From assembly GCF_964204645.1 (NCBI RefSeq), contig NC_134033.1:15880655-15944654 (forward strand): a stretch of DNA of 64,000 nucleotides, in the 5' to 3' direction. Under the pieces are notes generated by a model. That model saw nothing but the letters and a program-made list of their open reading frames with translations. It ran no database searches and was not told where the DNA came from. This DNA comes from Tubulanus polymorphus. Its lineage: Eukaryota; Animalia; Nemertea. This document shows, one piece after another, positions 22,684 to 48,015 of the stretch; position 1 is the first letter of the stretch, and each line of letters begins with the position of its first letter. The position numbers and the translations under genes were made by a program.

Positions 22684-25600
22684 TCAGCCAGCATATATTG
22701 TAGAAAGGTCTGCGGAAGTAGATACCACCTCAGCCGTCGCTGGTCGCGGCGGGGCTGGATTAGCGCTACCCCTTGCCGTGTGCGGGTTCGACGAACCGGA
22801 GCCCGTGGGTCCGACTGATACGAGCGGACCCGGGTAGCCGCTAGGCGGCGCCGTTTGTGGCTGTATGGAGCTGTCGGGTCGGTTGAATTTCACTTTCTGG
22901 TTCGCCGTTTCTACGTACAACACCGCGTATATCTTCGGCAAGAAGAGAAACACTAATGTGACCGTTCCGTTGAATATCAGAGCCAGAGATAAGAGTATTA
23001 TCTGATAATAAGCCTTAGTAGTGGTGAAATAAGTAGATATGAACGCCAGCCAGATTACTAGCGTCGTATACACGCAAAGAGCTATGAATCGCGACTCGTT
23101 GAAATTGTCGGGTACCTTTCGAGTTTTGAACGCGTAGAACGAACACATCGTGACCAGTATCAAGTTGTATAACAGAAACGCGCAGAGACCTTCAAACGGG
23201 ATCGCGCACGACATCTCGACGTAGTTTATTACCGATACGGGCATGCGCAGTATCACATCCGGTGGCGTAATGGCCGTACTGATTACGCTGATGATAATCT
23301 GAAAAAATGGAAAAAGGAAATTGTCAAAATTTTGCTTATGAAATCGACGATATCAAAATCAGATTCAAGAAATGCCTATTCACAATTCCTCCTATGACAT
23401 CATCAGAGACTGCAGTCTGCTATAGCATAATATTCATATTCGAAACTGACCATCAGTGAAGTCATATAATATGCTAATAGAGACATTTTTGTTCAAATGG
23501 TTTAAAATTGTCGCTTTTCAAGACATAATCTTATGTAAAGAGTTTTGACAATGTGTTTACGTCAAGCGCTTCTCGGGAACAAATAGAGCTTTAGTAGTAA
23601 TTTACGATTGGTCTTGCGGCAAATTATCTTGGTGTGATATCATGGAGGGGGTATTCATCGTGATGGGGGTATTCATTGGGCGACACGAAGATGCTAGAAG
23701 TGAAAAAAAGGAACGATCTTTGATTTGAAGTTTTGAGTATTACCTGAATAGTAATAATGAAACTGGCGATGAAAACCTGAAATTTCTGCCCGACTAAAGG
23801 TGGCGCTTTCATCGCCTTTTTACTGTACTCGAATATGATATAAATGCGGCTGGTTTTCGTCAGCAGCGGCGCGTAGACCCAGGTAAACCCGAGACTAAAC
23901 CCGAAATAAGCGGCTCTACACGATATAACTGTCGGTTTTACGACCAATAGAAATACAGTTACGTATCCGATGAAAACCCCGATCAACATCAAATGGCTGA
24001 GTTCCCGACTCGAAGCCATGATCAGTTTCTCTTTGCGTTTCAGTATGTACACGATCGTGGTTACCAGGGTCAGAATGATTCCTACAACCGCCGACATTGC
24101 CAACGTGTAGAAAGCTGCATCGTCGGTTTCCATGAAATATGGCTCGATCGGTTGGCATTCTAGGAAACTGGTTTGATTGGGCCAATGCAATTTCGCGCAC
24201 GGTTCGCATGTACTTTCGTTGACTACGATTTCGTTAACGGCGCATGCGCGACACTCCCAACAACAGGACAGTTCGCGGGGCAGGTAGAAATGGCCCGGTT
24301 CGCACGGCTTCGAACAAACAGATTCCGGAATAAGGACGTCGTTTTCATCACCGCCAGGGGGAGTTATTGGTCGGAATGGCTTCCATTTGACCTCGGAACC
24401 GTTCCAGTACATGGTATTCTCACGCGCGTACCACAGCGCTACTTTCTGTTTATGATATAGTGCACCGGCGCGTAGTGATTCGCCGCGGACGAACTGTTCG
24501 ATCGCGTATGTACCCATTAAATCGGATTCTTCGTTGAATAATATGTCACCGGTCAAACCACGAAATGTCGTATTCTTTAGATATTCCAACAAACTAGGAC
24601 CGTCGATACACGCTACTAACGCCGCCCTATCGGTGGTATTCGCGCAGCGGTCCCGGATTAACGAATCTAACGCGCGGGCGAATGTTTCCACCGAGTCGAT
24701 AACAGGTGCTATTGACGTCATCGGTCGCACGTGACCCGGCAGTAGTGGTCCCGTCTCGTTACACGGGGGTCGCTCTCCGCCGCCCACTATCCACGAGCAC
24801 CCGAACTGCATCTCCCAGAATTCTCGGAACCACGGGTTCGACATCCTGTTCGTCGGATTTAACGTCAGAAAATAACGATTGAAATCCGGTACGTTTACGG
24901 ATATGGGTAAGACGTGTAAAGCGCCGTGGATGGCTTCTTCTAGGCCGGACATCTGATTTACCCGAGCTGACCACGCGTCGCTGCCAATCCATATAAAATG
25001 CCCCGTAACGTTTTTCCTCAACACGGCCGCGAACAGACCTTTGGCGTTCGTCGGTCCAGCGAACACGATCACAGCTCGCGCCGCTTTCACCTCCAGTAAC
25101 CTATCGACGATCGTATCGTATTGTTTAACGGTCGTATCTTCGTAAACCCGCGCCGAATAAGCGATACAGCTGCCCCTTAAGTCGGTCAGGTCTGATAGAG
25201 ATTTAAACGCATTTTCGCCGTACGTTCCGGCCGTGTAGACCACCGATACGTAGGTCCAATTAAACCGCGTTAATATATCCATCATGGCGCGTACCTGGAA
25301 TTTATCGGGAGGAACTAATCGAAGAAAATACGGATATTCATCTTTACGGCTCAGTTCGTCCGCCGTGCTCGAATAGCTAATTTGAGGCACGTGAAATTGG
25401 CCGAGAAGTTTCGCTACCAGGGAACTGCTGCTACTCTTCATAGCGCCTACGACTCCTTTGACCGGGAAGTAATGTCGCGTTCCGTCCGACTGACCGGTAG
25501 TAGTTGCATTAGCGCCATCTCGCGGTACGAAATGTAACGCCTGACCCATAGCGGTCATATCTTTGATACAACTATCCAAAATGATGAATCCCAGCGTTAC

Positions 25601-25861
25601 GTTGGGCAGAATATCAGTTCTGTTATTCATTAGCTCTACGGCGTAAACCATCGCTTCAATGTACTGCATGATAGCTGTGTTTCTCAACGCATCCCCGCAC
25701 GGTTTACTAGAACTGTAGCCTTGGATCGGGAATATTCCGCCCAAGTTTATATCGCCCAGTCTAGCGTACTGTTTATCCGGTAGTCCCGGCACCCGTATCG
25801 ACCAGACCACACCGAGCATCGCCATAGATACGAACGCAACAATCGACCGTAGTGACGTCAT
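22684..25861 (-). CDS. Class C GPCR, metabotropic glutamate receptor-like (VFT + cysteine-rich + 7TM), ~910 aa; exons 25861-23744 and 23298-22684
   Basis: Signal peptide; GDINLGGIFP; ILPNVTLG...DSC; PQISYSST; NPWFREFW; PESVCSKPC; CCWEC; KTRKVPDNFNESRFI. One phase-0 GT-AG intron. Confidence 0.93.
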
Positions 25862-28800
25862 AGCGGGCAAAATTAAACGTACAACAGACTTGACGGTAGA
25901 CTAAATGTCGTTCTTCTCCAAAGAATTCCGCAATTTATTTTCTAACGGTTTTGGTATTCTGCCTTGTTGCCACTTTGTGATAATGGAGTTTAGAACGTAA
26001 AGTTTTCCTCAATTTGGGATTTTTGATTATCTATATCGCGTCCTTGACCTTTATATGAAACTAAAACTCGATCCGACATCAGCTCCAGCGAACGAACGTC
26101 GACAGTTTTCCATTAAGTTGCTTCCAGATAGAAACTTATTTAAAAGTGCCTGCAGATCGCATTACGACCGATATGATGTAAATTGTAATGATTCAATTAT
26201 TTTTGAACGCCTGGTTTTAATGCACCGTCCTTCGCGTGTGTTCGTTTTCCGTCGCCGTTCGCTTGGCGTCGAGTTCTTTTTTTTTGACGAAATGTATTCC
26301 CTTCTCGCGGAGGTTTCGTGTGATCGCGACGAATCTTAATTAAAATCTGAAACGATGTGGAAAGATAACATTTCAGAAAGGATTGGCTGACAAAAAGGGA
26401 TATCCGTAAATACATTTTTATATAGACCTGATTATCCCGAGGGTGAGACCTGTCTAATCGGAAATTACCATTCCGTTTTCGACGCGAGATGTATAATTAC
26501 GGATATTTTTGCGTGGTATTAAAATTGACATATTGTCATTATTCATTTCATAACGTATTCGTTTGCTGTAACAAATTTCAGGTTGCTAGGAACACACACG
26601 AGTGGAGCTAATTGAGTTGTTTTTGGTGATATTTTTGATACAATTACCATCGGGCATTTATCGTTTCACTTGAAAATGGCTGTCAGAAAACTTTTCAAAT
26701 AATCCTTATTTTCAGTTAATCCGTATGGATTTTACCAGGTCCCGCAATCTCTTTTGTGAAAATGGATTCTGTTATCAATTTAAATCTACACTCACCTTTG
26801 TTTGTGACAAGCAGTTTCGCAAGCAATTTTGCTATCTTCCTCCAAAAACTTTTTTTCGGATTTTATCTCTGTTTTTTAATAGTACCTTTTTCTATCTTGC
26901 CCGTAAAACTTTCGAATCTCGCGGCTGCGCAAGCCGATCAGCTACTGTCGAATCGAGCACTCCACGTATCCAGACCGGGTACATCCGAGTAATCAACCTC
27001 CCTCCCTCCCTCGTCAAAACAAATCTTAACATCCATCATCTGGTTACCATGGAGACCAGAAATGAGAACTGCGGTTATGGTTTTTATCTGTATATAATTG
27101 GAGAAGTTAAAAATCCCGTTTATATATCATCGCACGATTGCGCTTTTAAGAAGGTTTGCAAAACCCGGCGCAGCACCCGACCCCCGCTGTGAGCGCGTTA
27201 GCGCGTCATTTACAGGCAGCCGCTAATGACCCGGTAATCGGCGAATGAAACTACTCAGAAATAACACCTATCCTTACGAGATGACATCTCCATTTATTCG
27301 GTTATAAGTCGAGAACGCAACCGCGGCGTCGTCTCCTTTCACGGTCACGGCCGTGAGGCAACTGTATATACAGATTCAAAAGTTTAAAACCAAGAATTCA
27401 TTCAACCAAAAGTTGAAATCACACGACATTTCGAACTGTCCCGTCACCGATGATGATTCCTCTAGTGAGATGTCAAAATGCCGTATGCCATTCAAATTTT
27501 TGGTTGAATGAATTCTATATTTCAACCACACTTATTTCGATAATGGTTGTTAGTTGGAAAACACATTCGCTGTTTCGGATCTTTCAGCTTTTTCCCCATT
27601 TCTGGTTTGATGACACTCTAGTGTGTGCTAATTAAACCAGTAAAAACACGTCTGTTTTAAATCGATACTTGCGTTTTGCTGTTGAGAGGTCGTTCAGATA
27701 TTCGAGTTGAGAGGAGTTCGAAAGTACTTTTATTACAAAAAATAGTTCGAGCTGAACGCGATTATTCGAGTGAATTTAAAAAAGCATGGTTTAAAACATT
27801 AGGAGACGGATAACAGATTTCAACATATGCCGAGTTGAGAAGATTTTTGACTTGATCGGATCCGAGTTGAGAGGAGTCTTCTGTATTCATTATGTACATG
27901 TACATGTATGTTAAATGTGTGTTTGTATATCTGTATGCATGTGTAATGGGTGTATGTCAGCATGTATATCAAATAAATCAAATAATTTATAACAACTTTG
28001 ACGTGGATATTCCTGCTGAGGTTCTTCAGGGAAAATGGGAGGTAGGGGGTTTTTGGTTAGTGGATTCCCGCGAGTAATTCACAACACAAACAGAAACGAC
28101 AGCAACGACACAAGCACCAGCAGCAGCAGCAGCTGCTCAGCACCAGCGGATCAAAAAGCGTGGAAGTTAAGATCAACAAACGATGATTTTCCTTTTATTC
28201 AAGCATCACATTCAGTTTCTTACAAAGCAGTTCGATAAACGATGAGAGAAGACAGGCGCACCGGGTTTTGTTACCTGAAACAAATAGAACAGAAATCAGA
28301 AATGTATTCAGATCCACCTTTTTGTCTCAATTCAATTCAATACTTAATTTCACGGATAAGCGGAACAATAAGAACAGAGGAGATTTAAAGAAAAGAAAAA
28401 AAAACAAATTTACAAATATTGTCTCGCTAGGTGGCGCTATGTGAAGTCAGTCTCGCGCCACGAATGTAATCACGCGGGAAAGCAGTCCGCTTGGTGTTAT
28501 TAGAATGTGGCCGATTCTGAATTTTTGTTTGACTTTATTATGTGTTTTCGTAGTTGACTGACTTACGAACGAGCATGATAGACTTGAAGTTACACCATCT
28601 AGCGGAATAGTGCAGTTCATCGATTGCCCTATATCTATGAATGTCTACTCTACGAAAATTCTACGTGACTTCAAACTTCCTGACGTTTTCGTAATGGATA
28701 GTTGATTATGGGGAAAAACGATCACCGGAATTTAGTAAGCGATTAGCGTCACCGAATACACCATCAATTACTTAGTTTTTTGTAAACTTTCTAATTTTGA

Positions 28801-28891
28801 TTGTAAGATTTCGTACGTCAGTAAACTGTACTTTAGACGCTATAAATGACAAATAATCTTGATGTGACAAATGAATTGATTAACTTACATT

Positions 28892-31800
28892 TTAATGAAA
28901 GTCTTCGTGAACTTCGTGTTTATCTTCGTGCGTATCTGTATGTAAATCTTCGTATATTTCATTCAATCCGTCGCCGTGTACGACTTCACCGACATCTTCG
29001 TGTACCTCGTGCGCATCCTCGTGAACTTCGGGAATGTTCGGTTTGACCGGGTGCACCTCTTCGTGAACCTCCTGATGATCCTCGTGCGAGTCTGAATGCA
29101 CGTCGTTGTGTATCTCATCGAGTCCGTCGCCGTGCACAATTTCGTGCTTGTCCTCGAATACCTCGTCTACATCCTGATGTACCTCTGGATGCTCCTTCGA
29201 GGGTTCTATCACGACCTCGACTCCTTCCCCAGTGTGCGGTGGTTCTTCTATCACAACAACGACTCCTTCCTCCGTGTGCGGTGGTTCTTCTATCACAACC
29301 ACGACTCCTTCCTCAGTGTGCGGTGGTTCTTCTATCACAACCACAACTCCTTCCTCCGTGTGCGTTGGTTCATCAACAATGATGTAATCTTCAGTAATGA
29401 CGTCACTGCGCCCGATTGCCGGCATATATTCGTCGATGATATGATCATCTCCTTCATCCATCAAAACGGGACCGTGTTTACAACCTTTATGTCCAACAGG
29501 ACCATATCCTCCTCCAGCACCTCCAACCCCATAAACTGCTCCTCCTGTTATATAACTTTTTCCATATGCACCTTCAGAACCTGCATACGCTCCACCTCCG
29601 GCACCTCCTCCATACGCACCTGCTTCTCCGGCACCTCCTCCGTATGCACCACCTCCTCCAGCGCCTAATCCGTACGCACCACCTCCAGCACTTCCTCCAT
29701 ACCCACTTGCAGCACCTGAGCCGTAATTATCTGCTGGACCTCTTCCAGTTCCATATCCACTTATTCTATCTCCTTTGTAACTACTACCCCCGCCAGAACC
29801 TGCACCATAATCTCCAACACCTCCATACGCACCACCTCCTCCAGCATTACCTCCATAGGTAGCACCTCCTGTAGCACCTCCTCCATATGCACCTCCTCCA
29901 GCATTACCTCCATACGCACCACCTCCTCCAACATTTCCTCCATAGGCAGCACCTCCTCCTGCACCTTCTCCATAGGCACCACGTCCAGAATTTCCTCCAT
30001 ACAAAACACCTCCTCCAGCATTTCCATACGCACCATCTCCTCCAGCACCTCCTTTATAGGCACCGCCTCCTCCATAAGCAGCACCTCCTCCAGCACCTCC
30101 TCCATAGGCACCACCTCCTCCAACATTTCCTCCATAGGCACCACCTCCTCCATAAGCACCTCCTCCAGCACCTCCTCCATAGGCACCACCTCCAGAATTA
30201 CCTCCATACGTACCAGCTCCTCCAGCATTACCTTCATACACTCCTCCTCCTCCAGCACCTCCTTTATAGGCACCACCTCCTCCATACAAACCACCTCCAG
30301 CACCTCCTCCGTAAGCACCACCTCCTCTTGCGCCATATCCACCTCCCGAATTACCTCCGTGGCCACCTCCAAATCCGCCTCCATGACCACCTCCAACTCC
30401 GCCTCCGTGGCCACCTCCAACTCCGCCTCCGTGGCCACCTCCAAATCCGCCTCCATGACCACCTCCAACTCCACCTCCATGGCCTCCTCCAAATCCGCCT
30501 CCAACTCCGCCTCCGTGGCCACCTCCATGACCACCTCCAACTCCACCTCCGTGGCCACCTCCAAATCCGCCTCCATGACCACCTCCAACTCCACCTCCAT
30601 GGCCTCCTCCAAATCCGCCTCCAACTCCGCCTCCGTGGCCTCCTCCATGACCACCTCCAAATCCGCCTCCATGGCCACCTCCAAATCCGCCTCCATGGCC
30701 ACCTCCAACTCCGCCTCCATGACCACCTCTTACTCCGCCTCCATGCCCACCTCCAACTCCGCCTCCATGACCACCTCCAACTCCACCTCCGTGGCCACCT
30801 CCAAATCCGCCTCCATGCCCACCTCCGTGGCCTCCTCCAAATCCGCTTCCATGGCCACCTCCAAATCCGCCTCCATGGCCACCTCCAAATCCGCCTCCAT
30901 GGCCACCTCCAACTCCGCCTCCATGCCCACCTCCAAATCCGCCTACATGGCCACCTCCAAATCCGCCTCCATGGCCACCTCCAACTCCGCCTCCATGCCC
31001 ACCTCCAAATCCGCCTCCATGGCCACCTCCAACTCCGCCTCCATGACCACCTCCGTAGCCTCCTCCAAATCCGCCTCCATGGCCACCTCCAAATCCGCCT
31101 CCATGACCACCTCCGTGGCCTCCTCCAAATCCGCTTCCATGGCCACCTCCAAATCCGCCTCCATGGCCACCTCCAACTCCGCCTCCGTGGCCACCTCCAA
31201 ATCCGCCTCCATGCCCACCTCCAAATCCGCCTCCATGACCACCTCCAACTCCACCTCCGTGGCCACCTCCAAATCCGCCTCCATGCCCACCTCCAAATCC
31301 GCCTCCATGACCACCTCCAAATCCGCCTCCATGCCCACCTCCGTGGCCTCCTCCAAATCCGCCTCCATGCCCACCTCCAGATCCACCTCCATGACCACCT
31401 CCAACTCCACCTCCATGGCCACCTCCAAATCCGCCTCCATGACCACCTCCAAATCCGCCTCCATGCCCACCTCCGTGGCCTCCTCCAAATCCGCCTCCAT
31501 GCCCACCTCCAGATCCACCTCCATGACCACCTCCAACTCCACCTCCATGGCCACCTCCAAATCCGCCTCCATGACCACCTCCAAATCCGCCTCCATGCCC
31601 ACCTCCGTGGCCTCCTCCAAATCCGCCTCCATGGCCACCTCCGTGGCCTCCTCCAAATCCGCCTCCATGCCCACCTCCAGATCCACCTCCATGGCCACCT
31701 CCAAATCCGCCTCCATGGCCACCTCCAAATCCGCCTCCATGGCCACCTACATGGTCACCTCCAAATTCGCCTCCATGACCACCTCCGACATCGTCCAATC

Positions 31801-33358
31801 CTCCGATATGATCTGGTCCTCCCATGTGATCTGGTCCTCCCATGTGGTCGAGTCCTCCCATGTGATCTGGTCCTCCCATGTGATCTGGTCCTCCCATATG
31901 ATCTGGTCCTCCCATGTGATCTGGTCCTCCCATGTGGTCGAGTCCTCCCATATGATCTGGTCCTCCCATGTGGTCTGGTCCTCCCATATGAGCTGTTCCT
32001 CCCATATGATCTGGTCCTCCCATGTGGTCGAATCCTCCCATATGATCTGGTCCTCCCATATGATCTGGTCCACCCATGTGGTCGAGTCCTCCCATATGAT
32101 CTGGTCCTCCCATGTGGTCGAGTCCTCCCATATGATCTGGTCCTCCCATGTGGTCGAGTCCTCTCATATGATCTGGTCCTCCCATGTGGTCGAGTCCTCC
32201 CATATGATCTGGTCCTCCCATATGATCTGGTCCTCCCATATGATCTGGTCCTCCTATATGACCTGGTCCTCCCATGTGGTCGAGTCCTCCCATATGATCT
32301 GGTCCTCCCATATGGTCTGGTCCTCTCATATGATCTGGTCCTCCCATATGATCTGGTCCTCCCATATGATCTGGTCCTCCCATGTGGTCGAGTCCTCTCA
32401 TATGATCTGGTCCTCCCATATGATCTGGTCCTCCCATGTGGTCGAGTCCTCTCATATGATCTGGTCCTCCCATATGATCTGGTCCTCCCATATGATCTGG
32501 TCCTCCCATGTGGTCTGGTCCTCCCATATGAGCTGGTCCTCCCATATGATCTGGTCCTCCCATGTGGTCGAATCCTCCCATATGATCTGGTCCTCCCATA
32601 TGATCTGGTCCACCCATGTGGTCGAGTCCTCCCATATGATCTGGTCCTCCCATATGATCTGGTCCTCCCATGTGGTCGAGTCCTCTCATATGATCTGGTC
32701 CTCCCATGTGGTCGAGTCCTCCCATATGATCTGGTCCTCCCATATGATCTGGTCCTCCTATATGACCTGGTCCTCCAATGGGGTCTAGTCCCCCGATATG
32801 CGGTCCACCGTGACCGTGAAGTCCTCCATGATCAAGTGGCCCACCAGGGCCGTGTGGTCCAGCAGGTCCGTGAGGTCCCTCAGGGCCATCAAAACCTCCT
32901 AGAGGTCCTCCTGGACCGTGTGGTCCTTCAGGACCGCGTGGTCTTCGAGGGCCTTTACGATCCCGTCGACCGAGAGGTCCTCCTGGACCGTGTGGTCTGC
33001 GAGGGCCTTTTGGTCCCCTGGGACCGAGAGATGCTCCAGGGCCGCGTGGTCTACCAAAAGGTCCTAAATAGAAAACAATATTTCAAGTCATTTTAGTGAA
33101 ATACATGTTGAATGATGTTCATTGAATACTCTTTGACAGTAATGTAATATGTTTATTTCTACAGCACGTTCCATAGGAAGGTGGCTGCATCCATTCTTGA
33201 TTCCCCCTATGACGTTGTCATTATAATCGTCATAAGGGGTTTAACGGATGGTGCCGTCTTTTTTGGATAGCTCTACCTACACGTATACTAACACCTATAT
33301 ACATACCCCCTGAACAAGCTACGAATCCTACAAACACCAGTAACACGAATATCTTCAT
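28892..33358 (-). CDS. Secreted Gly/His/Met/Tyr-rich repetitive structural protein A, ~1407 aa; coding exons 33358-33307 and 33063-28892
   Basis: Signal exon [17 protein letters not shown] with G|GTATGT donor; acceptor TTTAG at 33065-33064 joins in frame to the 1283-aa ORF. Non-coding exon 1 donor at 33616 and TATTTATA upstream. 3'UTR intron 28888-28275 and AATAAA at 28199-28194. Confidence 0.85.
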
Positions 33359-33688
33359 GATCTGATGAAATATTGAACATTGAATTTAGTTTTTTTTTTC
33401 ATGCGATATTGAGAGAACAATTCTGATAATTTGTAATTCCAGCCTCCATAAAACCCCAAATACATCAGTAATTACCGAACTGCATGAGACATCTGATAAA
33501 ATGAACTATTCACAGATGCTTTAGCTAAATGCAATGAACGCAGTACGGTTATTCGATGATGTCATTGGAGGATTTATGGAGGACGTCATCATTTTAGAGA
33601 GTTGATGAAACTTACCGGAGTTCTGTGAATGGTGCGCACTATTCGACGTAACTCCAATGAATTAAGGAAATTTTCTGTCAAACTGAAC

Positions 33689-33899
33689 TATAAATAGCGG
33701 AACTTATATGCTCACGTGTGTCAGACAAAAGTGGCTAAAAATCCATTCATTCTAGTCGGTAACATTTGTCGAGACGCCGGCGGCCCCCTCACCTGAGGTT
33801 CTGCTGTCCGACGGCTTATTTACTTTTGTCATAGATCGGTTTTGTTTTACAGTTTTGTTTTATCGTTTTTGCGCCTCTGCAATTCGGTAACGATAGAAA
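33689..33899 (-). promoter_or_regulatory. TATA-like box and conserved upstream block of gene A (paralogous block 41388-41465 upstream of gene B)
   Basis: TATTTATA at 33696-33689; a ~78-bp block (33822-33899) is nearly identical between the paralogs. Confidence 0.55.
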
Positions 33900-33997
33900 C
33901 TATTGACACGGGATTCCGTAACAGATGTCAGCAGACTATACACAACACGTCGCCTGCTTTCAGTTTAACACAGTTCCCGGTTTAGTTTAAAACTCTG

Positions 33998-34105
33998 GGT
34001 CCAGTTCCACAGTTCCGAGTTGAGATTTGACTTTGAGTTAAATCATTGAAAATGATCGAACTTTAACTCAGAGTTACCGCTAACTCACAACAGTGGAACC
34101 GGGTC
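33998..34105. mobile_element. CWG-TSD MITE (TIR ggtccagttccacag); further copies at ~54961-55068, 55329-55402, 59975-60088, 60712-60801
   Basis: ctg|ggtccagttccacagtt ... aacagtggaaccgggtc|ctg. Confidence 0.75.
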
Positions 34106-37100
34106 CTGAAGAGTTAAAACCAAGTAGTTTCCAATATTTTCTTTAAATATATAGTCAGATTTCAACCGAGAATCTTGGATTCCCCACGACCATCGACCGA
34201 AGAAAAATGTGATTAGGTGGATCGAGAGATTTAGCTATAGGGATCACATCTTCATTTGGCTTTTTTGGCACTTTGATGTGTATCTATTGGTTTATGATTA
34301 TAGGCAGTGTTTTAAAGTTCACGAAAAATACTTGATGACTAATAGAACTTAATAAAATAGTCTACCTTATAAACAGTACATGTACGGTACTCTCATAATG
34401 GCGTACAGTGCTACTGTGGTAATCGAGGATTCCACGTGTGGCAGGCGAGGATCCGCCAGGTTCGCTAGTGGTCATCCGCGTTCGATATCTTCAATATTTC
34501 AATTAAATCTAAATGAACGTTTCTCTTAAATGAATCAATTATCTATGAAAACTATACCGATATCCGAGTAGAAAAATGAAAGTATTGTACATTTTGGGTG
34601 CTGTGATAGATGCGGGAGTCTGAAAATCTTTGGTAATGAACTGATTTTGACGACAGACGACCTATCACTCGTCACACCATCTGGTAATTTTGCGGGTTCC
34701 CCATTGCGTAAACTATGTATAAGTGGGTAGCTAAACTTAAACAACGAGTTATTGAATTTTTTTTCCATGTACGTCAATCCCGGATTTTTACGCAGGTATT
34801 TTTAGGGATCGGGTTCATTGGCAACTCCCCTGGATCCACCCCTGATGGTGTAAATCATGGGGCGGGGAGGGGGGTTGGTCAGATAGACTAAGAAATATAT
34901 CACAGGACAATATTTGATAATAATGACATATTTCACACTAGCACACCTGGTGGATCCCCGATTGCCAGTGTTAGTTCTCTTTTGCCTCAGCAGTTGACGT
35001 CTCCTCACAGAGCAACTCGAAGGAAAGGAAAATATGCCCAAAGAAGCCGAAAAGGAAAGCACCGAAAGCAAACCAGGGGCAGGGGAATAAGGTGACGAAA
35101 CTGGTGCCTCACTTGCCATTAATGTCGACTTGTTATCTCTTGCTCCACCCATTGTTCAAACACCCCTCCGCAAAAAGTCACAAGATTCTAAAATAACCAA
35201 TGAAATGCAAAATGATATATACATTTTAGATCTTACCTGTTAACAATCATACTTACATGAATACCGAGTACGTACATTCCTTAGCTTGAACTAATATCTT
35301 CCGAAATTGTACCCTCGAGTACAGCAAGGTCGATAACGCGCATTTTTAAATACGGCACTTGTTGTGTTGGATGCTTGGGTGTTTTTAAAATATGAATACC
35401 AGATGTAAGAATCAATAGGGAAGCAGTGTCTCGAGACACAGCTGTTCTATTGTGACAGTCATGTCAAGTCGCTACAAGGCCCACCACGCAAACAACTGAT
35501 AGATCAGTTATCGGCTGGTGGTTTTTTCAATTTTTCATTTCATAATTTCATTGAAACACTTTTATAGATAGAACCTGAAGGGACCATGGAACCACTGACT
35601 TCCTATGAGAAATGGGTCTATTTTTATACTAGCACAACTGGTGGATCCCCGCTCGCCAGTGGTTAATTCTCATTTGCCAGATCATGCAGTTGCTGTTCAT
35701 TTCCATGTTGTTGTTTTCTTTCTATTTTGACCATGGAACCACTGACTTCCAATGAGAAACGCATCTATTTTGACCATGGAACCACTGACTTTCAATAAAT
35801 CACGGGTTATATTGCCATTTCGACCATGGAGCTACATGCAGTTGTAGGTTAGATTCAAAATCTGCGTGCATCAAGCTGACATATTATCAGTGTTGTCTAA
35901 TCTATGAATGATAATCCCCAGTTCAGTGCCTAGCCTAACGAACCGCTTAAATACGTTTTCATGCAGTTTTGTCTTTACCGGTTCGAGGGGTATCTATCAG
36001 CTGTCTGCACTCTCTGTCTGGACGCTGCAGCCCCTCAGTCTGTTTACCCCGCGCCCACTCAATGTAGACCCGTCGTACTCTCAATCTGGACGAACCCTCT
36101 CACAGTACGTCATACTTTCAACGTCAAAATATCAAATCGGAAATGTCTCAATCTCCTGAACTATCAAAGAACTGTTGCATATCCCATTACTCTCCTCAAG
36201 ACTGTGGTTAGATTTAGTACATTTCAAAAATCCTAATAATCAGATGGTTTATTGGAATAGATCAGAATCCTCTTCAAAGTGATCGCAAAAATCAACAACC
36301 CAAAAACTCCAAAGTCGAATTGCAAAAAAAGTTGCATTAGCTTTATTTCTAACATGGTAACAATATTGAATACCTGAAAACATTGTAAACATTGGATTAT
36401 TAATAGTTATACAATTATATAATGAAAAAGCCGACGCAGATTTGGAAACCAGAGGCTTTTTTTCTTCCAAGCCATCATACTCAGCCATCCATGGAGCAAA
36501 TTCAACAAACAATAGCTCATTTGAAATAAAAACGTTGTACTTTCAACCTGGAATAAGATTAAGTCTATAAGAGATTTATCATCAATGAAACCAGGGACAA
36601 CTTAAGTTGGTAAATACTTTTTTTCTGGTACGGGCTGCGTGAACCATGTATATATGCGTCTCGCATAATTAATTCGAATTGTCAGCTAAGTCGAGTTAAA
36701 AGTTAACCCCCGTTCGTGAAACCGGGCCCTGGCACTCTAACATTCGCATCCGATTCAGATACATAGACTGGTGGCCGCTAAGCGACAACCAAACTGTCCG
36801 CCCAAGAAATCTTTGGAAATGTTAAGACGGCAATGTTTGTGTTGACTTTGGCGGGTAGTAAGCAAACCCAGGCCACGCATTTGTTAGCAAACAGTTTAGG
36901 TAAAAGTGTAGATCCGCACCTCTCGTGGTTGACGCAATCTGCTGAATGCCAGAATCCTGGCTAAAATCTTTCTACTCTCTAGTGAAGATATCTTAAAATT
37001 AGCCAATGCCCAATGGCAATGTACTGAATTGCTGATGACATTTTGAATCTGAAACAATGATATTTCATGTAATTGATTGAACTGTTTATGCGGAGAGGTG

Positions 37101-37621
37101 CGGATCTGCACTTTTACCAACAGTTTATAATATTGTGTCCCAAAACGAGCCGTAGTTAAAGCGAAAAGTCGTATTGAGTCCGCAGCTACCGGTGGAAAAG
37201 TGCTCCGCCATATTGGAAAAGTCGGTTTGATGTCGTAAACCGTTCGCCGAACGGTTTACCGTAAACAAAGACGCCGGTTTATCAAAACCGGGTTGTAAAC
37301 CGGTATGAACAAAGACGATTTTCCTACAAACCGAAACGATGCAAACCGATTCTTCGAAAATGCGCCTTTGGATTCAGTGATGGGTAGGGTGAGGATTGCT
37401 CCGCAGCTGCCGGAGTTACTCCTCGCATCTATCAACATAAGTTCTTTGAAACGACAACGGAATTTAGGCAAAATATATTTGATATACATAGCGCACGTGT
37501 AGTTATATTTTGGTTGCGCTTATATTTGTCAAATTAGTTCGTTGTGACTCCACGCGTTAAAATGTCGTTGATGTCGCCATCATTCCGGGTTTATCCTAGG
37601 AGGCGCTGTATACGCGGCCTC

Positions 37622-37928
37622 CTACATTTCATTTTTGACTGTAAATTACTTACCGAATTCCGTGAAAGCTACCTAAATTCAAATACCTTTCGGAATCTCG
37701 ATGTTTTTAAAAATCCAACTTTTAAACTTGCTAAATTTATCAAATTTGGTCTAGATGTATATAGATCCCTCCGGTAGTGTGTGTAAATAGTATGTTGTAT
37801 ATAACGTTTGTTATGTTTCAAAGTGCTTTTATCTACTATTTTTGTAAATAATTGTAAATACTGTTTTTTCCTCCATATACCATGGAAATGGTTGGAGTGT
37901 AATAAATATTCGTATTCCTATTCGCATT
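37622..37928 (+). mobile_element. Second, more truncated copy of the LINE at 5106-5648
   Basis: LHFIFDCKLLTEFRESYLNSNTFRNLDVFKNPTFKLAKFIKFGLDVYRSLR*, same 3'UTR and a decayed (ATTCGT)n tail. Confidence 0.85.
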
Positions 37929-38628
37929 CCAGTGTTTCGAAGGCTTTGTTTTACCTATTTGAGCGTCCATGAAGAAGCGATAGAAGATAATCATTGTAGT
38001 AATCAGCGACAATAAATTACCAAAACAAATCGTCTTTTCCAAATTTATTGCCGTCGTCATTTTTTTTATCTCCGTGTGTTTGATCCGTTTTGTGAAAGCA
38101 CGTGTACAGGCTGATTAACTTGGGCAGGACCCACAGGCCGCACCCTGCACATCATCGTATTAACAATCTATTGCCAATGACAAATAGCTGTGTCTTCGAT
38201 ATTGACAAATCTGTATTAGCGAATGACGTTAAAACAATTCTACCAGCGAAATTCATGTTAACTGAATATTTTGTTTTATTCTTAGCAAATATACAATTTC
38301 TATTGGGCGATTATAAATACTTTCGTTTTTTTATCATTGTGAAAACCGTGTAAAATACATGTATTTCTTTTTCAACTCAAAAAAAATATTTAAAAATCTT
38401 ATTCGATATATCATCATATGGGATATATAATTCAATATGTTATTTATGAAAATGACTAACAACCCGAACACAATTTCGTATAAACTCATAAAGATATGGG
38501 ATTCGAACTTATTACGACAAAATCCGAACCACGACGATATCCTTGTAATTAACAGACTGCGCCTGAATCGAACATACGGTGCATTGAACCGAATCGCTTC
38601 AGAGTGAACACACACGAGTGTTCTAGAT

Positions 38629-40962
38629 CTAGTACCCACCTCCTCCAGCATTTCCTCCGTATGCACCACCTCCTCCAGCATTTCCTCCGTATGCACCACC
38701 TCCTCCAGCATTTCCTCCATACGCACCACCTCCTCCAGTATTTCCTCCATACGCACCACCTCCTCCAGTATTTCCTCCATACGCACCACCTCCTCCAGCA
38801 TTTCCTCCGTATGCACCACCTCCTCCAGCATTTCCTCCATACGCACCACCTCCTCCAGTATTTCCTCCATACGCACCACCTCCTCCAGTATTTCCTCCAT
38901 ACGCACCACCTCCTCCAGTATTTCCTCCATACGCACCACCTCCTCCAGCATTTCCTCCGTATGCACCACCTCCTCCAGCATTTCCTCCATACGCACCACC
39001 TCCTCCAGTATTTCCTCCATACGCACCACCTCCTCCAGCATTTCCTCCGTATGCACCACCTCCTCCAGCATTTCCTCCGTATGCACCACCACCTCCAGCA
39101 TTTCCTCCGTACATACCACCTCCAGCACCTCCTCCATACATACCACCTCCAGCACCTCCTCCATACGCACCACCTCCTCCAGCATTTCCTCCGTACATAC
39201 CACCTCCTCCAGCATTTCCTCCGTACATACCACCTCCAGCACCTCCTCCATACATACCACCTCCTCCAGCACCTCCTCCATACGCACCGCCTCCTCCAGC
39301 ACCTCCTCCATACGCACCGCCTCCTCCAGCACCTCCTCCATACGCACCACCTCCTCCAGCACCTCCTCCATACGCACCTCCTCCAGCATTTCCTCCGTAC
39401 ATACCACCTCCAGCACCTCCTCCATACGCACCACCTCCTCCAGTATTTCCTCCATACGCACCACCTCCTCCAGCATTTCCTCCGTATGCACCACCTCCTC
39501 CAGCATTTCCTCCGTATGCACCACCACCTCCAGCATTTCCTCCGTACATACCACCTCCAGCACCTCCTCCATACATACCACCTCCAGCACCTCCTCCATA
39601 CGCACCACCTCCTCCAGCATTTCCTCCGTACATACCACCTCCTCCAGCATTTCCTCCGTACATACCACCTCCAGCACCTCCTCCATACATACCACCTCCT
39701 CCAGCACCTCCTCCATACGCACCACCTCCTCCAGCACCTCCTCCATACGCACCTCCTCCAGCACCTCCTCCATATGCACCACCTCCTCCATCACCTCCTC
39801 CATACGCATCACCTCCTCCAGCACCTCCTCCATACGCACCTCCTCCAGCACCTCCTCCATAACCACTTTCAGCATCTGGTCCATATTTATCTCCTGGACC
39901 TCTTCCAGTTCCATATCCACTTATTCTATCTCCATTATAACTGCTTCCCCCGCCAGAACCTGCACCATATCCATTACCTCCTCCAGCACCTCCATAGGCA
40001 CCACCTCCTCCAGCACCTCCATAGGCACCACCTCCTCCAGCACCTCCATAGGCACCACCTCCTCCAGCATTCCTTCCATATGCACCACCTCCTGCAGCCC
40101 CTCCTCCATACCCACCACCTCCTGTTACTCCATATCCACCCCCTGCATTTCCTCCATAGCCACCTCCAAATCTTCCTCCTCCATGGCCTCCTCCAAATCC
40201 ACCTGCATAATTACCTCTTTGACCGAATCCACCTCCGAAACCACGTCCAAATCCAGCCCCAATGCCTTTTCCAAATCTGCCTCCAGGGCCTCCTCCAAGT
40301 CCACCTGCATAACTACCTCTTTGACCTCCGAATCTTCCATACCCACCACCTCCTCTTACTCCGTATCCACCCCCTGCATTTCCTCCATAGCCACCTCCAA
40401 ATCTTCCTCCTCCATGGGCTCCTCCAAATCCACCTGCATAATTACCTCTTTGACCGAATCCACCTCCAAAACCACGTCCAAATCCAGCCCCAAGGCCTTT
40501 TCCTAATCCAGCCCCATAACCGCCTTTAAATCCGCCTCCCATGTGACCTGGCCCTCCTATATAACCTGGTCCTCCCATATGACCTGGTCCTCCCATGTGG
40601 CCTGGTCCTCCCATGTGGCCTGGTCCTCCCATATGGCCTGGTCCTCCGAGCGGTCCACCAATAGGTCCTATAAGGAAAACAACATTATAATTGAATTATT
40701 TCAGTGAAGTACATGTTGATGTTCAACTCTGTGATAGTAATATATTAATAACGTTATCTTTACAGCGTGTTCCTTAGGAAGAACGTTACATCCGTTCAAC
40801 GCTCTATGATGCTATCATTTCGATCGTCATAAGGGGTTTAACGGATGGTGCCGTCTTTTCTGGATGGCTCTACGTACACGTATACTAACACCTATACATA
40901 CCACGAAGGAAACCTGAGCCAGCTACGAATCCTACGAATGCCAGCAACACGAGTGTCTTCAT
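38629..40962 (-). CDS. Secreted Gly/Tyr-rich repetitive structural protein B, ~699 aa, paralog of A; coding exons 40962-40902 and 40667-38629
   Basis: Signal exon MKTLVLLAFVGFVAGSGFLR, G|GTATGT donor, acceptor TATAG at 40669-40668, in frame with the 667-aa ORF. Same exon layout as A (non-coding exon 1 donor at 41173). Confidence 0.85.
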
Positions 40963-41779
40963 GATCTGATGAAATAATGAACATTGAATTTAGTTTTCTG
41001 GTCATTCGATTTTGAGGTTGCTATTTCAACGAGATCTTAATCATTTGTAACTGCAGCCCCCATTTTATCCAAAATACATCAATAATCAGTAACTATGTAA
41101 TGAATGCAGTACGGTTATTCATTGCAGAATTCATGGAGGAAGTCATCATTTTAGAGAGTCGATGAAACTTACCGGAGTTCTGTGAATGCTGCGCACTTTT
41201 CGATGTTACTCCAAAAGAAATGTTCTGTCAAAATGAGCTATAGATAGCGGAACTTATATATATGCACAGGTGTGCCAGACACAGATGTGCCAGACAAAAA
41301 TGTCAAATATCATTCGTTTCAATCGGTAACATTTGCTGCAACGCCTGCGGTTCCCTCAACTGAACATCTGTTCTTCTACGGCTAATGTACTTTTGTCATA
41401 GATCGGTTTTGTTTATAGTTTTGTTTTATCGTTTTTGCGCCTCTGCAATTCGGTAACGATAGAAAATACTAACATAAGTTTCGTAACAGGTGGCTTCAAA
41501 CTACAAAACGTCACCACTTAAACACAGTTGTCGGTTTTTGTTTGACTCATTACTCCATTTCTAATATTTAATGACTCTAGAACTGTTGAACCGGGTTCCA
41601 CCATCGAGTTATCAACGAACCACCAAAAATGCGATTAAATTGTGTAAATCCTAGGAATCTAGATAAACTGATATCGTTGGAAATTATTTGATATAATATA
41701 CTTCACTCTAGCAGGCCTGGTGGATCCTCGCTTGCCATTGGTGAATCCCTTTTACCACAGCAGTTTTCTTCACGGCGAA

Positions 41780-42480
41780 ATTAAAAGAAAATGAAAATGA
41801 ACTCAAAGAAGCTATAAAGGAAAGTGCCGTAGGAAGGTCAGGGGCTATGGAAAAAGTTGACGAAGCTAAAAAGAGATCAGCAAGGACAAGAAAGAATTCG
41901 AAAAATGATTATTTGAGAAAAAAGTCGTATTTCACACTAGCACATCTGGTGGATCCTCGCTTGCCACTGGTGAATTCTCTTTTGCCACAGCAGTTGATGT
42001 TTTCTTCACAGAGACTTGAAAAACTCAAAAGAAGCTGAAAAGGAAAGCACCAAGGGAAAAAAGTTGACGAAGCTAAAAAAAAGAATTCAGCGAGGACAAG
42101 AAAAATAGTCAAAGAGGCCGTCTAAGATGAAAAGACGGAAGGAAAGAAAGTGGACGAAGCCAAAAAGAAAGTAGAAACCGGCGCCCCAGCTCCAGCCAGA
42201 GAGGGAGCCGCATAAGAAGTCATAAGAGAGGAAAAAGGAAGATACAGAAAAAGCCAAGAAAAAAGTAGAAGAGAAAACTAAGAAACTCAAAGAAAAGGAA
42301 AATAAACTCAAAGAAGCTGAAAAGGAAAGCGTCGAAGGAAAGCAGAGGGCTAAGGAAAAAGTTGAACCTGGTTGTGCTCCGGCCTCACTTGCCATTCTTG
42401 TAGACGTGTTATCTTGCTCCACCCATTGTTCAACTAACACCCCTCCGCAAAAAGTCACAAGACCAGTAAAATACAAAATA
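41780..42480 (+). pseudogene. Degenerate Lys/Glu-rich coding-like exon(s); paralogous remnant at ~35010-35190
   Basis: After acceptor-like ttttcttcacag (42011): ...KKVDEAKKKVETGAPAPA...EDTEKAKKKVEEKTKKLKEKENKLKEAEKES..., with stops and frameshifts. Confidence 0.35.
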
Positions 42481-43067: not shown

Positions 43068-43463
43068 TTATTGCCATTGTGCTTTTTGTTCTGCGGCATC
43101 TCTGACCCGGTTCAAATGAGACAGAGTTTTCGCATCCTCCATCTTTCTTTTGTCGACGCCTCTTTCGTCGCGCTGAAAAGAACTATCGCTGCTGCCTCTA
43201 ATCTGTTGCGACGACCGTTTTAAGCGAAGCGACCTTTTACGACGACTAACGCTCCTATCGAAATCCTCATCGTGTATTTCTATATCCGCGAATTCAGGCT
43301 TGTCCGGCACCGCTGGTAACGGGTCGGCGTATCTGCGGTCAAGCGCTACTTCTTCCAGCACATCACCGCCAACTTCGTCTCTAGCTCTGAGTTCGAATCG
43401 GTCATATCCCATAACTAATCCTGACATCGGTACCAACAACAAGCAAAAAATCACGCCTTTCAT
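43068..43463 (-). CDS. Secreted prepropeptide, 131 aa, with multiple basic cleavage sites
   Basis: Signal peptide MKGVIFCLLLVPMSGLVMG, acidic pro-region, RR/RRKR/KR/KRK sites. Acceptor at 43474-43473 just upstream of AAAATG; upstream donor at 43620; AATAAA at ~42875 and ~42863. Confidence 0.7.
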   Translation of the reverse strand: MKGVIFCLLLVPMSGLVMGYDRFELRARDEVGGDVLEEVALDRRYADPLPAVPDKPEFADIEIHDEDFDRSVSRRKRSLRLKRSSQQIRGSSDSSFQRDERGVDKRKMEDAKTLSHLNRVRDAAEQKAQWQ

Positions 43464-47160: not shown

Positions 47161-48015
47161 ATGGATTTATTGAAAAGACGGCCTCTGAACGCTTGTTGTT
47201 TCCCTCGGACTCCGCGAGATCGGATTACATTCCTCATTTTCCTCGGCGGCGGCCCGTTTCTCATCTGGTACGAACTATTTCACGTACGGCCTCGAATCGA
47301 CCACGACCCTGATTTATTGTGGCACCACCTGGTGGCCACTGCCTTCATATTCGTAGGGGTCTACACGAACTTATACAAGATGGTTTCTACAGACATTTCA
47401 ACCGGATTTTTGTCGAAGCGGGATGTCGGTGATAAATCCAAACCGGGCGATCGATACTGCGATATTTGTAAACGCCGGACTCCAGTCCGGACTCATCACT
47501 GTAAACTATGCAACGTGTGTATTTTAAAACGTGACCACCATTGTTGGTTCGCCGGATACTGCGTTGGTTACGGTAACCAACGATATTACGTCATGGCGAT
47601 CGCGTATTGTTGGATCGCGGGATTTTACGCACAAGCTTACTACATCGAATTCGTCAAGGCAGTGTTAGGGTCATCGCTATGGCAACTCGGTAGTTTACTG
47701 GCCCCGCACGTCCCGTTCATGTTAGGATATTATACGGCGTACGAATTCGTTATAGCTGCTTTAACATCCATCGGTATATTCCTGCAAATAGTGTTAACCT
47801 GGCTGCTGCAGATACAGTTGGTGCAGATCGTCGGCGGTCAAACGCGCCACGAGCGCGCCAAAAATATCACCAAATACAACCTGGGTTTGGTAGCGAACGT
47901 GCGAGAAGTTTTCGGCGATCGTTGGTATCTAGTCTGGTTGAGCGCGTTCATACCGTCACGGTTGCCCGGCGACGGCGTCCATTTTGTCGAAGCGGAGAAA
48001 ACGAAAATTAAATGA
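47161..48015 (+). CDS. ZDHHC24: DHHC palmitoyltransferase, ZDHHC24-like, single coding exon, 284 aa
   Basis: YCDICKRRTPVRTHHCKLCNVCILKRDHHCWFAGYCVG, GQTRHE, YNLGLVANVREVFG, PSRLPGDG; C-terminal KxKxx. Confidence 0.85.
   Translation: MDLLKRRPLNACCFPRTPRDRITFLIFLGGGPFLIWYELFHVRPRIDHDPDLLWHHLVATAFIFVGVYTNLYKMVSTDISTGFLSKRDVGDKSKPGDRYCDICKRRTPVRTHHCKLCNVCILKRDHHCWFAGYCVGYGNQRYYVMAIAYCWIAGFYAQAYYIEFVKAVLGSSLWQLGSLLAPHVPFMLGYYTAYEFVIAALTSIGIFLQIVLTWLLQIQLVQIVGGQTRHERAKNITKYNLGLVANVREVFGDRWYLVWLSAFIPSRLPGDGVHFVEAEKTKIK

Follow-up and report, generated by a model that had tools for sequence, protein, structure and literature searches.

A tandem pair of secreted glycine-rich block-copolymer genes in the nemertean Tubulanus polymorphus, candidate components of a cross-linked silk-like material

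Introduction

Of what proteins are the secreted materials of a nemertean made? The question is raised by two neighbouring genes, here termed A and B, which lie on the minus strand between positions 28,892 and 40,962 of a 64,000-nucleotide stretch of the Tubulanus polymorphus genome (NCBI RefSeq assembly GCF_964204645.1, contig NC_134033.1, positions 15,880,655 to 15,944,654). This whole stretch is called the window, and all positions below are counted from its first letter unless a contig is named. The source animal is a palaeonemertean with an assembly of 268 Mb. To our knowledge nemerteans have no jaws, cuticle or cement, and the candidates are thereby narrowed to a mucus tube or sheath, the proboscis secretions or extrusomes, and egg coats. 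The tubes that tubulanids secrete are mucous or parchment-like; a stylet is absent, and the proboscis bears pseudocnidae. We know of no characterised structural protein from any nemertean secretion, be it a tube, a mucus sheath, the adhesive secretion of the proboscis or the pseudocnidae. The structural compounds of the pseudocnidae are explicitly stated to be uncharacterised (PMC7897414), and a search of the literature on tube building in Tubulanus returned nothing usable.

The reading that we favour, with belief and doubt about evenly balanced, is that A and B form a lineage-restricted tandem pair of secreted, disordered, Gly-rich block-copolymer silk-like structural proteins, cross-linked through His-metal bonds and through laccase-driven oxidation of Tyr. 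Below we describe the gene models, the blocks of the two proteins, their relatives inside and outside the genome and a laccase with an A/B-like tail, and then weigh this reading against its alternatives.

Two Genes with One Exon Plan

The open reading frame list of the window contains two very long Gly-rich frames on the minus strand, at 28892-32743 and 38629-40632, and these are also the sole two G+C-rich, strongly C-skewed patches within the window. Each repeat frame extends upstream to an AG acceptor, and about 240 nt further up lies a short exon that starts with ATG, encodes a signal peptide and ends in phase 1 at GTATGT. When the exons are joined at the GT-AG junctions located in the sequence, proteins of exactly 1407 (A) and 699 (B) residues result, the lengths that the original prediction had given as approximate. 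The common architecture that it had proposed, with a TATA element, a short non-coding exon, a signal-peptide exon and one giant repeat exon, could likewise be read in both minus-strand genes, giving each three exons, with the donor of exon 1 conserved between them. The placement of exon 1, of the start of transcription and of the junctions is a prediction from the genomic sequence. The joined proteins served for local counts of length and composition, and all database searches were made exon by exon. The models of the two genes are as follows.

33358-33307 + 33063-28892, minus: coding sequence of gene A, 1407 residues, one terminal stop
33688-33710, minus: TATA-like element of A (CATATAAG...TATTTATAG), conserved in B, putative function
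33616-33680, minus: putative non-coding exon 1 of A, donor CTCCG/GTAAGT after 33616 conserved between A and B, 5′ end not placed
33616-33361 and 33307-33063 (exon edges), minus: predicted introns of A
33307-33361, minus: exon 2 of A, ATG at 33358, 17-residue signal peptide, ends in phase 1
28534-28891, minus: putative 3′ untranslated region of A to the first AATAAA, 352 nt past the stop
40962-40902 + 40667-38629, minus: coding sequence of gene B, 699 residues, one terminal stop
41238-41260, minus: TATA-like element of B, conserved with A
41173-41230, minus: putative non-coding exon 1 of B, donor CTCCG/GTAAGT conserved between A and B, 5′ end not placed
41173-40965 and 40902-40667 (exon edges), minus: predicted introns of B
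40902-40965, minus: exon 2 of B, ATG at 40962, signal peptide, ends in phase 1
38275-38628, minus: putative 3′ untranslated region of B to the first AATAAA, 348 nt past the stop

A consensus donor-like GTAAGT also stands at 28886-28891, three bases past the stop codon of A, and an intron in the 3′ untranslated region is possible there.

Both signal peptides consist of MK, 12-13 hydrophobic residues and small residues at -3 and -1, that of B being MKTLVLLAFVGFVAGSG. The N-terminal signal is the top hydropathy window of each protein (residues 3-21 in A). A second hydrophobic segment, N-glycosylation sequons and Trp were all looked for in A and B and none was found, nor do dibasic processing sites occur inside the repeat blocks of A.

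Blocks of Protein A

Mature protein A is about 125 kDa with an isoelectric point (pI) of 5.8, and is composed of 47% Gly, 10.9% His, 6% Asp, 5.6% Pro and 3.8% Met. It has about 150 His and 53 Met and carries a net charge of about -95. Its giant exon divides into five blocks.

32777-33063, minus: block 1, basic and Gly-Pro-rich, residues 18-113, pI 11.8
31805-32776, minus: block 2, GGPDHM-type hexads, residues 114-437, 54 hexads with 54 His, 51 Met and 50 acidic residues
30353-31804, minus: block 3, GGGX tetrads, residues 438-921, 73% Gly, 63 His, 34 Phe
29492-30352, minus: block 4, GGGAY-type Tyr block, residues 922-1208, 33 Tyr, with a non-repetitive linker shared with B
28892-29491, minus: block 5, Cys and acidic His/Glu/Val tail with the stop, residues 1209-1407, pI 4.4

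All the blocks that had been proposed for A (Gly-Pro-X, GGPDHM, GGGHGGGF/V, GGGAY and an acidic His/Glu/Val tail) are thus present, and its description as an acidic, potentially metal-binding protein agrees with the acidic composition and with the great wealth of potential metal ligands. The 54 hexads run in perfect register, 34 of them being exactly GGPDHM, and the protein contains 49 Asp-His-Met units. Exon 3 further holds 117 GGGX tetrads (60 with His, 30 with Phe and 20 with Val), and 57 HGGG units occur in the protein. The tail, with 61 Asp+Glu and 26 His, begins with four units of a (V)4 type. The only Cys of mature A, residue 1212, lies within HKGCKHG. AlphaFold2 gave the tail a pLDDT of 48, with weak strands only, at the VVVVIEE units. 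We also considered the Gly-Pro-X stretch as a collagen domain and rejected it: at most seven uninterrupted Gly-X-Y triplets are in register, and residues 19-124 matched no Pfam family, Collagen (PF01391) included, at E<=1.

Blocks of Protein B

Mature protein B is smaller (about 55 kDa) and has a pI of 9.3, with 59% Gly, 12.5% Ala, 9.1% Tyr, 4.7% Asn and 1% His. The 683 residues include 18 Lys+Arg against 6 Asp+Glu, a net charge of about +12, and the basic residues are confined to residues 65-200 while the large C-terminal block is uncharged. Four blocks make up its exon 3.

40537-40667, minus: block 1, five GGPGH(M/I)-type hexads, read from the sequence
40129-40536, minus: block 2, Arg/Lys/Phe/Tyr-Gly, internally duplicated, pI 11, includes GGGHGGG
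39853-40128, minus: block 3, GGGAY units and linker, 83% DNA identity to A at 29957-29580
38629-39852, minus: block 4, about 40 deca- and nonapeptides GG(N/G)(A/T)GGG(G)(A/M)Y, ends GGY-stop

The GG(N/G)(A/T)GGG(G)(A/M)Y type accounts for 29 decads and 10 nonads, and GGNAG occurs 20 times. The few GGPGHM, the Arg/Lys/Phe-Gly block and the roughly 45 GGG(A/M)YGG(N/G)(A/T) units expected of B were all found, the last with a count of 44 G(A/M)Y units. B had also been called basic and Tyr-rich; the second half of this description stands (9.1% Tyr), and the first holds only weakly given its few charged residues. The Cys and acidic tail of A left no trace in B, and no remnant was found downstream of B.

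Tandem Duplication and Shared Promoter Modules

When the 5′ modules of the two genes (A 33927-33048, B 41492-40652) are aligned from the promoter to the signal exon, with exon 1 and both introns included, they agree in 85% of columns, and the module is present only twice, at A and at B, in the whole genome. By this alignment A and B are recently duplicated tandem paralogues. Because the 5′ regulatory and signal modules are near-identical, co-expression of the two genes is likely. One part of the module stands out.

33811-33899, minus: upstream block of A, candidate shared cis-regulatory element, nearly every one of positions 2-90 of the A sequence unchanged in B
41378-41465, minus: upstream block of B, nearly identical to that of A in the alignment

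This block of about 89 bp lies some 100-200 bp upstream of the TATA elements, is conserved more than the signal exon and has no further copy in the genome; it may be a shared enhancer or a recent gene-conversion tract.

The blocks follow the same order in A and B and are collinear and partly homologous, namely in the GGPxHM units and in the GGGAY block with its shared linker (83% DNA identity). The two genes therefore descend from one multi-block ancestor and differ in which block expanded. The original prediction had the repeat blocks expanding independently in the two genes; different expansion is what we see, but full independence does not fit collinear, partly homologous blocks on one ancestral plan.

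Apart from the genes themselves, four intergenic segments between A and B (33971-34165, 34361-34555, 36896-37285 and 37481-38065) have word depths on the contig of 10^3-10^4, against about 36 for unique sequence, in the DNA runs. They are high-copy dispersed repeats, and related pieces lie upstream of B at about 41685-42462. Within intron 1 of A, at about 33537-33604, a stretch of about 50 nt has matches among short elements in other parts of the genome, one of them a tandem array at C8:778568-779350.

Relatives Inside and Outside the Genome

We searched the 268-Mb assembly with degenerate-codon patterns. The patterns GP(D/G)HMGG, HGGGFGGGH and GNAGGGGAY have matches only in A and/or B, HGGGFGGGH only in A. 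One further gene of the same plan was found.

C9:~10705950-10707400, minus: gene C, 5 Mb from A/B, signal exon in phase 1 and one repeat exon

Its exon plan is that of A and B, with a probable non-coding exon 1 suggested by the acceptor before the ATG and a repeat exon that starts Gly-Pro/Phe-Gly-Pro. The blocks of gene C stand in a parallel order and run from GGHGGPMMHGDM repeats, which are of the His/Met-Gly type, through poly-Gly-Tyr-Ser-Met and a basic block rich in Pro to a single Cys (KGRCRGY) and an acidic tail of the IVIVIEEPG type. The tails of A and C align (BLASTP E value 2e-4). In A and C, unlike B, a knuckle of the pattern basic-Cys-basic precedes an acidic tail with (I/V)3IEEP units, and across the genome the (I/V)3IEEP pattern is confined to A, C and a single chance site. 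From these features gene C appears to be a distant paralogue of A. The (M/I/V)3IEEP match on contig C10 is a chance match.

Outside the genome, Pfam assigned no family, Collagen included, to A, B, C, the A tail or the N-terminal block of A. A word-indexed homology search with exon 3 of B considered 8000 candidates and gave none at E<=0.001, an outcome that composition correction makes uninformative. An exhaustive phmmer search of the A tail against 1.84 billion representatives returned 11 weak matches and no self-match; the seven of these that were inspected all proved to be unrelated repeat proteins and were rejected as homologues. A feature search of the ESM Atlas with A and B gave no usable match, and none of six A/B motif strings was found in published full texts. 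The expectation that these repeats belong to no described protein was therefore upheld by Pfam, phmmer and the motif search of full texts alike, and A and B are, as judged by these searches, lineage-restricted proteins.

We also looked at the supplementary tables of a Cephalothrix mucus and proboscis proteome (PMC12846013), which contain no Gly/His-rich secreted proteins and whose Gly-rich strings match nuclear RNA-binding proteins only. Tryptic proteomics would be nearly blind to sequences of the A/B type, since Lys and Arg are almost lacking from blocks 2-4 of A and from block 4 of B.

A Laccase with an A/B-Like Tail

A laccase cluster lies at C9:5.69-5.72 Mb, on the same chromosome as A and B, and two of its genes are of concern here.

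C9:5700479-5702887: tailed laccase, all three Cu-oxidase Pfam domains, intact HCHIEPH...M site
C9:~5709700-5709899: second putative laccase, 7 kb downstream of the first, terminal exon only read, ends NAGGRGGAGGY-stop

The last exon of the tailed laccase is joined in phase via a canonical GT-AG junction and encodes a tail with GPHMGG, which is closely related to the repeat motifs of A and B, then poly-Gly with GGGNAGGGG and a terminal AGGY-stop. Across the genome the GGNAGGGG pattern is found only in A (once), in B (17 times) and in this laccase tail, and GPHMGGG in the laccase tail only; reversed-pattern controls gave zero for both. B likewise ends GGY-stop, as do both laccase tails. A motif-bearing laccase tail fits oxidative curing of the Tyr blocks, and although the likeness is confined to a short motif, it is the one piece of evidence that links A and B to a specific chemistry, the oxidative cross-linking of Tyr.

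A Proposed Mechanism

Under our preferred reading of A and B as cross-linked structural proteins, both would be made in the same gland cells via their near-identical promoters and stored as a concentrated fluid, and after release their Gly/aromatic blocks would condense. The roughly 150 His of A (57 HGGG, 49 Asp-His-Met and 26 His in the tail) could then form reversible transition-metal cross-links, Asp-His-Met triads being plausible ligands of Cu or Zn in terms of general coordination chemistry. The 37 and 62 Tyr of A and B, in the GGGAY blocks that the two share, would be cured covalently by secreted laccases, and the tailed laccase may be recruited into the material by its A/B-type C-terminal tail. 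By analogy with the terminal domains of silks, the Cys and acidic tail of A, a plan common with gene C, may serve for dimerisation, for solubility or as an assembly switch triggered by pH or metal. The product would most likely be the mucus tube or sheath, or a proboscis secretion.

A bolder version, which we think rather improbable, is that the curing enzyme is addressed to its substrate by mimicry: the A/B-style tail would partition the laccase into the A/B condensate for Tyr oxidation, while Cu held in the HGGG and Asp-His-Met arrays would supply or buffer the metal of the oxidase.

Weighing the Alternatives

The most sceptical view of the locus takes A and B for non-functional or weakly expressed repeat expansions, open only since simple repeats are without stop codons. 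It is true that the arrays can also be read without a stop in other frames and on the opposite strand, for up to 1069 codons, that the public runs give no RNA support and that the representative library of public proteins gave no self-match. However, the proposed frame alone spans the non-repetitive N-terminal, linker and tail segments and joins the signal exon in phase; the splice sites are canonical in both paralogues, and gene C repeats the plan. Arrays of three periods are moreover kept in one frame over 4.2 kb, and variation among the repeats is biased to the third position. Among the hexads of A, variation is 0.173 at third codon positions against 0.025 and 0.056 at the other two, and departures from the consensus codons are synonymous in 39 cases and non-synonymous in 27. 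This excess, which is also seen in the other arrays, more weakly than in the hexads, is as expected for coding sequence in the proposed frame. We regard silent repeats as very unlikely.

The remaining alternatives accept real proteins and differ in what these do. Acidic A and basic B could be obligate partners of a two-component complex coacervate that phase-separates by charge, for which the common promoter modules suggest co-expression, the net charges are opposite (about -95 and +12) and the shared GGGAY blocks could mix. But 18 basic residues in 683, all between residues 65 and 200, with an uncharged C-terminal block, are little to pair with, and paralogues may equally serve different cells or times; such a coacervate is unlikely. 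That nemertean mucus is a defensive secretion with many unannotated secreted proteins (PMC12846013) suggests instead Gly/His-rich antimicrobial or metal-sequestering polymers of the epidermal mucus, and the approximately 150 His and 53 Met of A could chelate Cu, Zn or Ni. Set against this are the size of A, 125 kDa without dibasic sites inside its repeat blocks, the near absence of His from B, and the Tyr-rich blocks with a matching laccase tail, which point to cross-linking; a defensive role seems quite unlikely. Gly/Tyr-rich eggshell proteins are known from flatworms and insects, and A and B might accordingly be egg-coat or chorion proteins from ovary or accessory cells, tanned by phenol oxidases. 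Their Gly/Tyr/His composition and the laccase link would suit such a role, and absence from a possible whole-animal RNA set fits sex- or season-limited expression; we give this view a slender chance.

Several observations weigh against the structural, laccase-cured pair that we prefer. Three sequencing runs from one study contain the locus (mapped on 32801-38635), with intergenic DNA covered and no splice joints; since intergenic sequence is covered and joints at the introns are absent, we take these runs to be DNA. One possible RNA run of T. polymorphus contained none of the locus, which speaks mildly against very high body-wide expression or reflects an effect of the sample. The motif common to the laccase tail and A/B is short (8 residues) and sits in a Gly-rich context, a distance of 10 Mb separates the laccase from the A/B pair, and a comparison of the A/B promoters with the laccase and gene C loci revealed no cis element in common. 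Charge-driven pairing of A with B, which the original prediction had made co-secreted partners, is weak at a net charge of only about +12 on B. Gly-rich secreted proteins of this sort arise repeatedly in animals, and Gly/His-rich ones may be antimicrobial, as are antifungal peptides of insects and plants.

Other Features of the Window

The window also holds features outside the A/B pair. A class-C G-protein-coupled receptor (ANF_receptor, NCD3G, 7tm_3) lies largely in one 748-codon frame, and the NCBI entry 'metabotropic glutamate receptor 4-like [Tubulanus polymorphus]' matches its single-exon frame at 23624-25870 with 100% identity.

22684-25870, minus: class-C G-protein-coupled receptor
43068-43463, minus: 131-codon frame 2 kb upstream of B, signal-like N-terminus, several dibasic sites, no Pfam family
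47161-48015, plus: single-exon DHHC palmitoyltransferase (ZDHHC24-like), best named relatives in gastropods at 41-45% identity
58443-58940, minus: tandem repeat of units of about 20 residues in an open 165-codon frame

Significance

The A/B locus offers concrete candidates for a nemertean material, with exact gene models. In a single chain protein A joins Asp-His-Met hexads, prion-like HGGG units and Tyr decads, three modules of different chemistry, and it closes with an acidic tail; B is an almost pure Gly/Ala/Tyr/Asn polymer of elastomer-like kind. If our reading of A and B as a cross-linked structural pair is correct, hardening by His-metal bonds together with Tyr oxidation would have originated independently outside annelids, molluscs and arthropods, the motif-sharing laccase tail would suggest a rule for how curing enzymes find their substrate, and the short regular peptide modules could be of use for biomimetic materials. 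If the material is the wall or core of the pseudocnidae, the pair would parallel, by convergence, the Gly/His-rich and short-collagen proteins of cnidarian nematocysts. Should the genes be silent or purely defensive, they would be just another lineage-specific low-complexity gene pair.

Comparison with Known Systems

Among the closest known systems are the jaw proteins of annelids, Nvjp-1 of Nereis and the Glycera jaw protein. Nvjp-1 itself is a Gly/His-rich protein that hardens the jaws of Nereis via Zn-His bonds and can be cross-linked via Tyr (PMC9465683). Like A, it is secreted, disordered and rich in Gly, His, Tyr and acidic residues. It is however a 38 kDa protein with more than 25 mol% His and about 35 mol% Gly (PMC9465683), whereas A is 125 kDa, keeps its His in separate blocks and adds 3.8% Met; with 10.9% His in A (13% in the His block) and 1% in B, the His level of Nvjp-1 is reached by neither.

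For the His block of A, the octarepeat of the prion protein PrP offers a comparison. There HGGGW is the fundamental Cu(II) unit, with the His and the next two Gly amides as ligands (PMC6721516). Of the 57 HGGG in A, 46 are HGGG(F/V) with an octad rhythm, and the His and Gly-Gly part of the ligand set is present; against the PrP octarepeat PHGGGWGQ, A has 0 HGGGW and 0 PHGGG, no Trp, Pro or Gln in the unit, 60 units instead of 4-5, and no PrP match in Pfam. As far as the sequences tell, the likeness is one of a short motif only and convergent.

The His-rich proteins of squid beak share with A and B low-complexity secreted repeats of Gly, His and aromatic residues, and in the squid these are linked to liquid-liquid phase separation before curing (PMC6884462). 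Their GHGxY motif has 0 matches in A and B, and in A the His and Tyr are placed in different blocks. Bivalve abductin, with its decapeptide FGGMGGGNAG, and the mussel thread-matrix protein are decapeptide elastomers of Gly/Met/Phe or Gly/Tyr/Asn composition. B resembles them in its Gly-rich decapeptides with GGNAG, an aromatic residue and some Met, and in its 59% Gly; FGGMGGGNAG is nevertheless absent from A and B, B has Tyr where abductin has Phe, and the phylum is another. With fibrillar collagens and minicollagens A shares a Gly-Pro-X-rich stretch in the N-terminal 96 residues of the mature protein, but with at most seven triplets and no Cys-rich flanks. The pair would work in the manner of the His-, Tyr- and Gly-rich structural proteins of annelid jaws, squid beaks and byssus. 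On the features compared here, A and B are not members of the jaw-, beak- or byssus-protein families.

The class into which both proteins do fall is that of the silk-like structural proteins (SLSPs), defined by the possession of a signal peptide, the lack of a transmembrane segment and a Gly content of 25% or more within 80 residues (PMC4944945). It is an operational class and not a homologous family, Nemertea are not mentioned in PMC4944945, and A and B are known here from their genes alone. SLSPs have evolved many times independently and build tough extracellular materials (PMC4944945). In windows of 80 residues the Gly content of A and B reaches maxima of 75% and 68%, and 88% and 100% of the windows respectively pass the 25% level. 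The highest mean Kyte-Doolittle hydropathy over 19 residues is 1.11 (A) and 0.38 (B) in the mature proteins, in agreement with the absence of a transmembrane segment, and both carry a signal peptide as judged by hydropathy and residue pattern. A and B thus share with the SLSPs a signal peptide, the lack of a transmembrane segment and a Gly-rich low complexity that lies far above the threshold.

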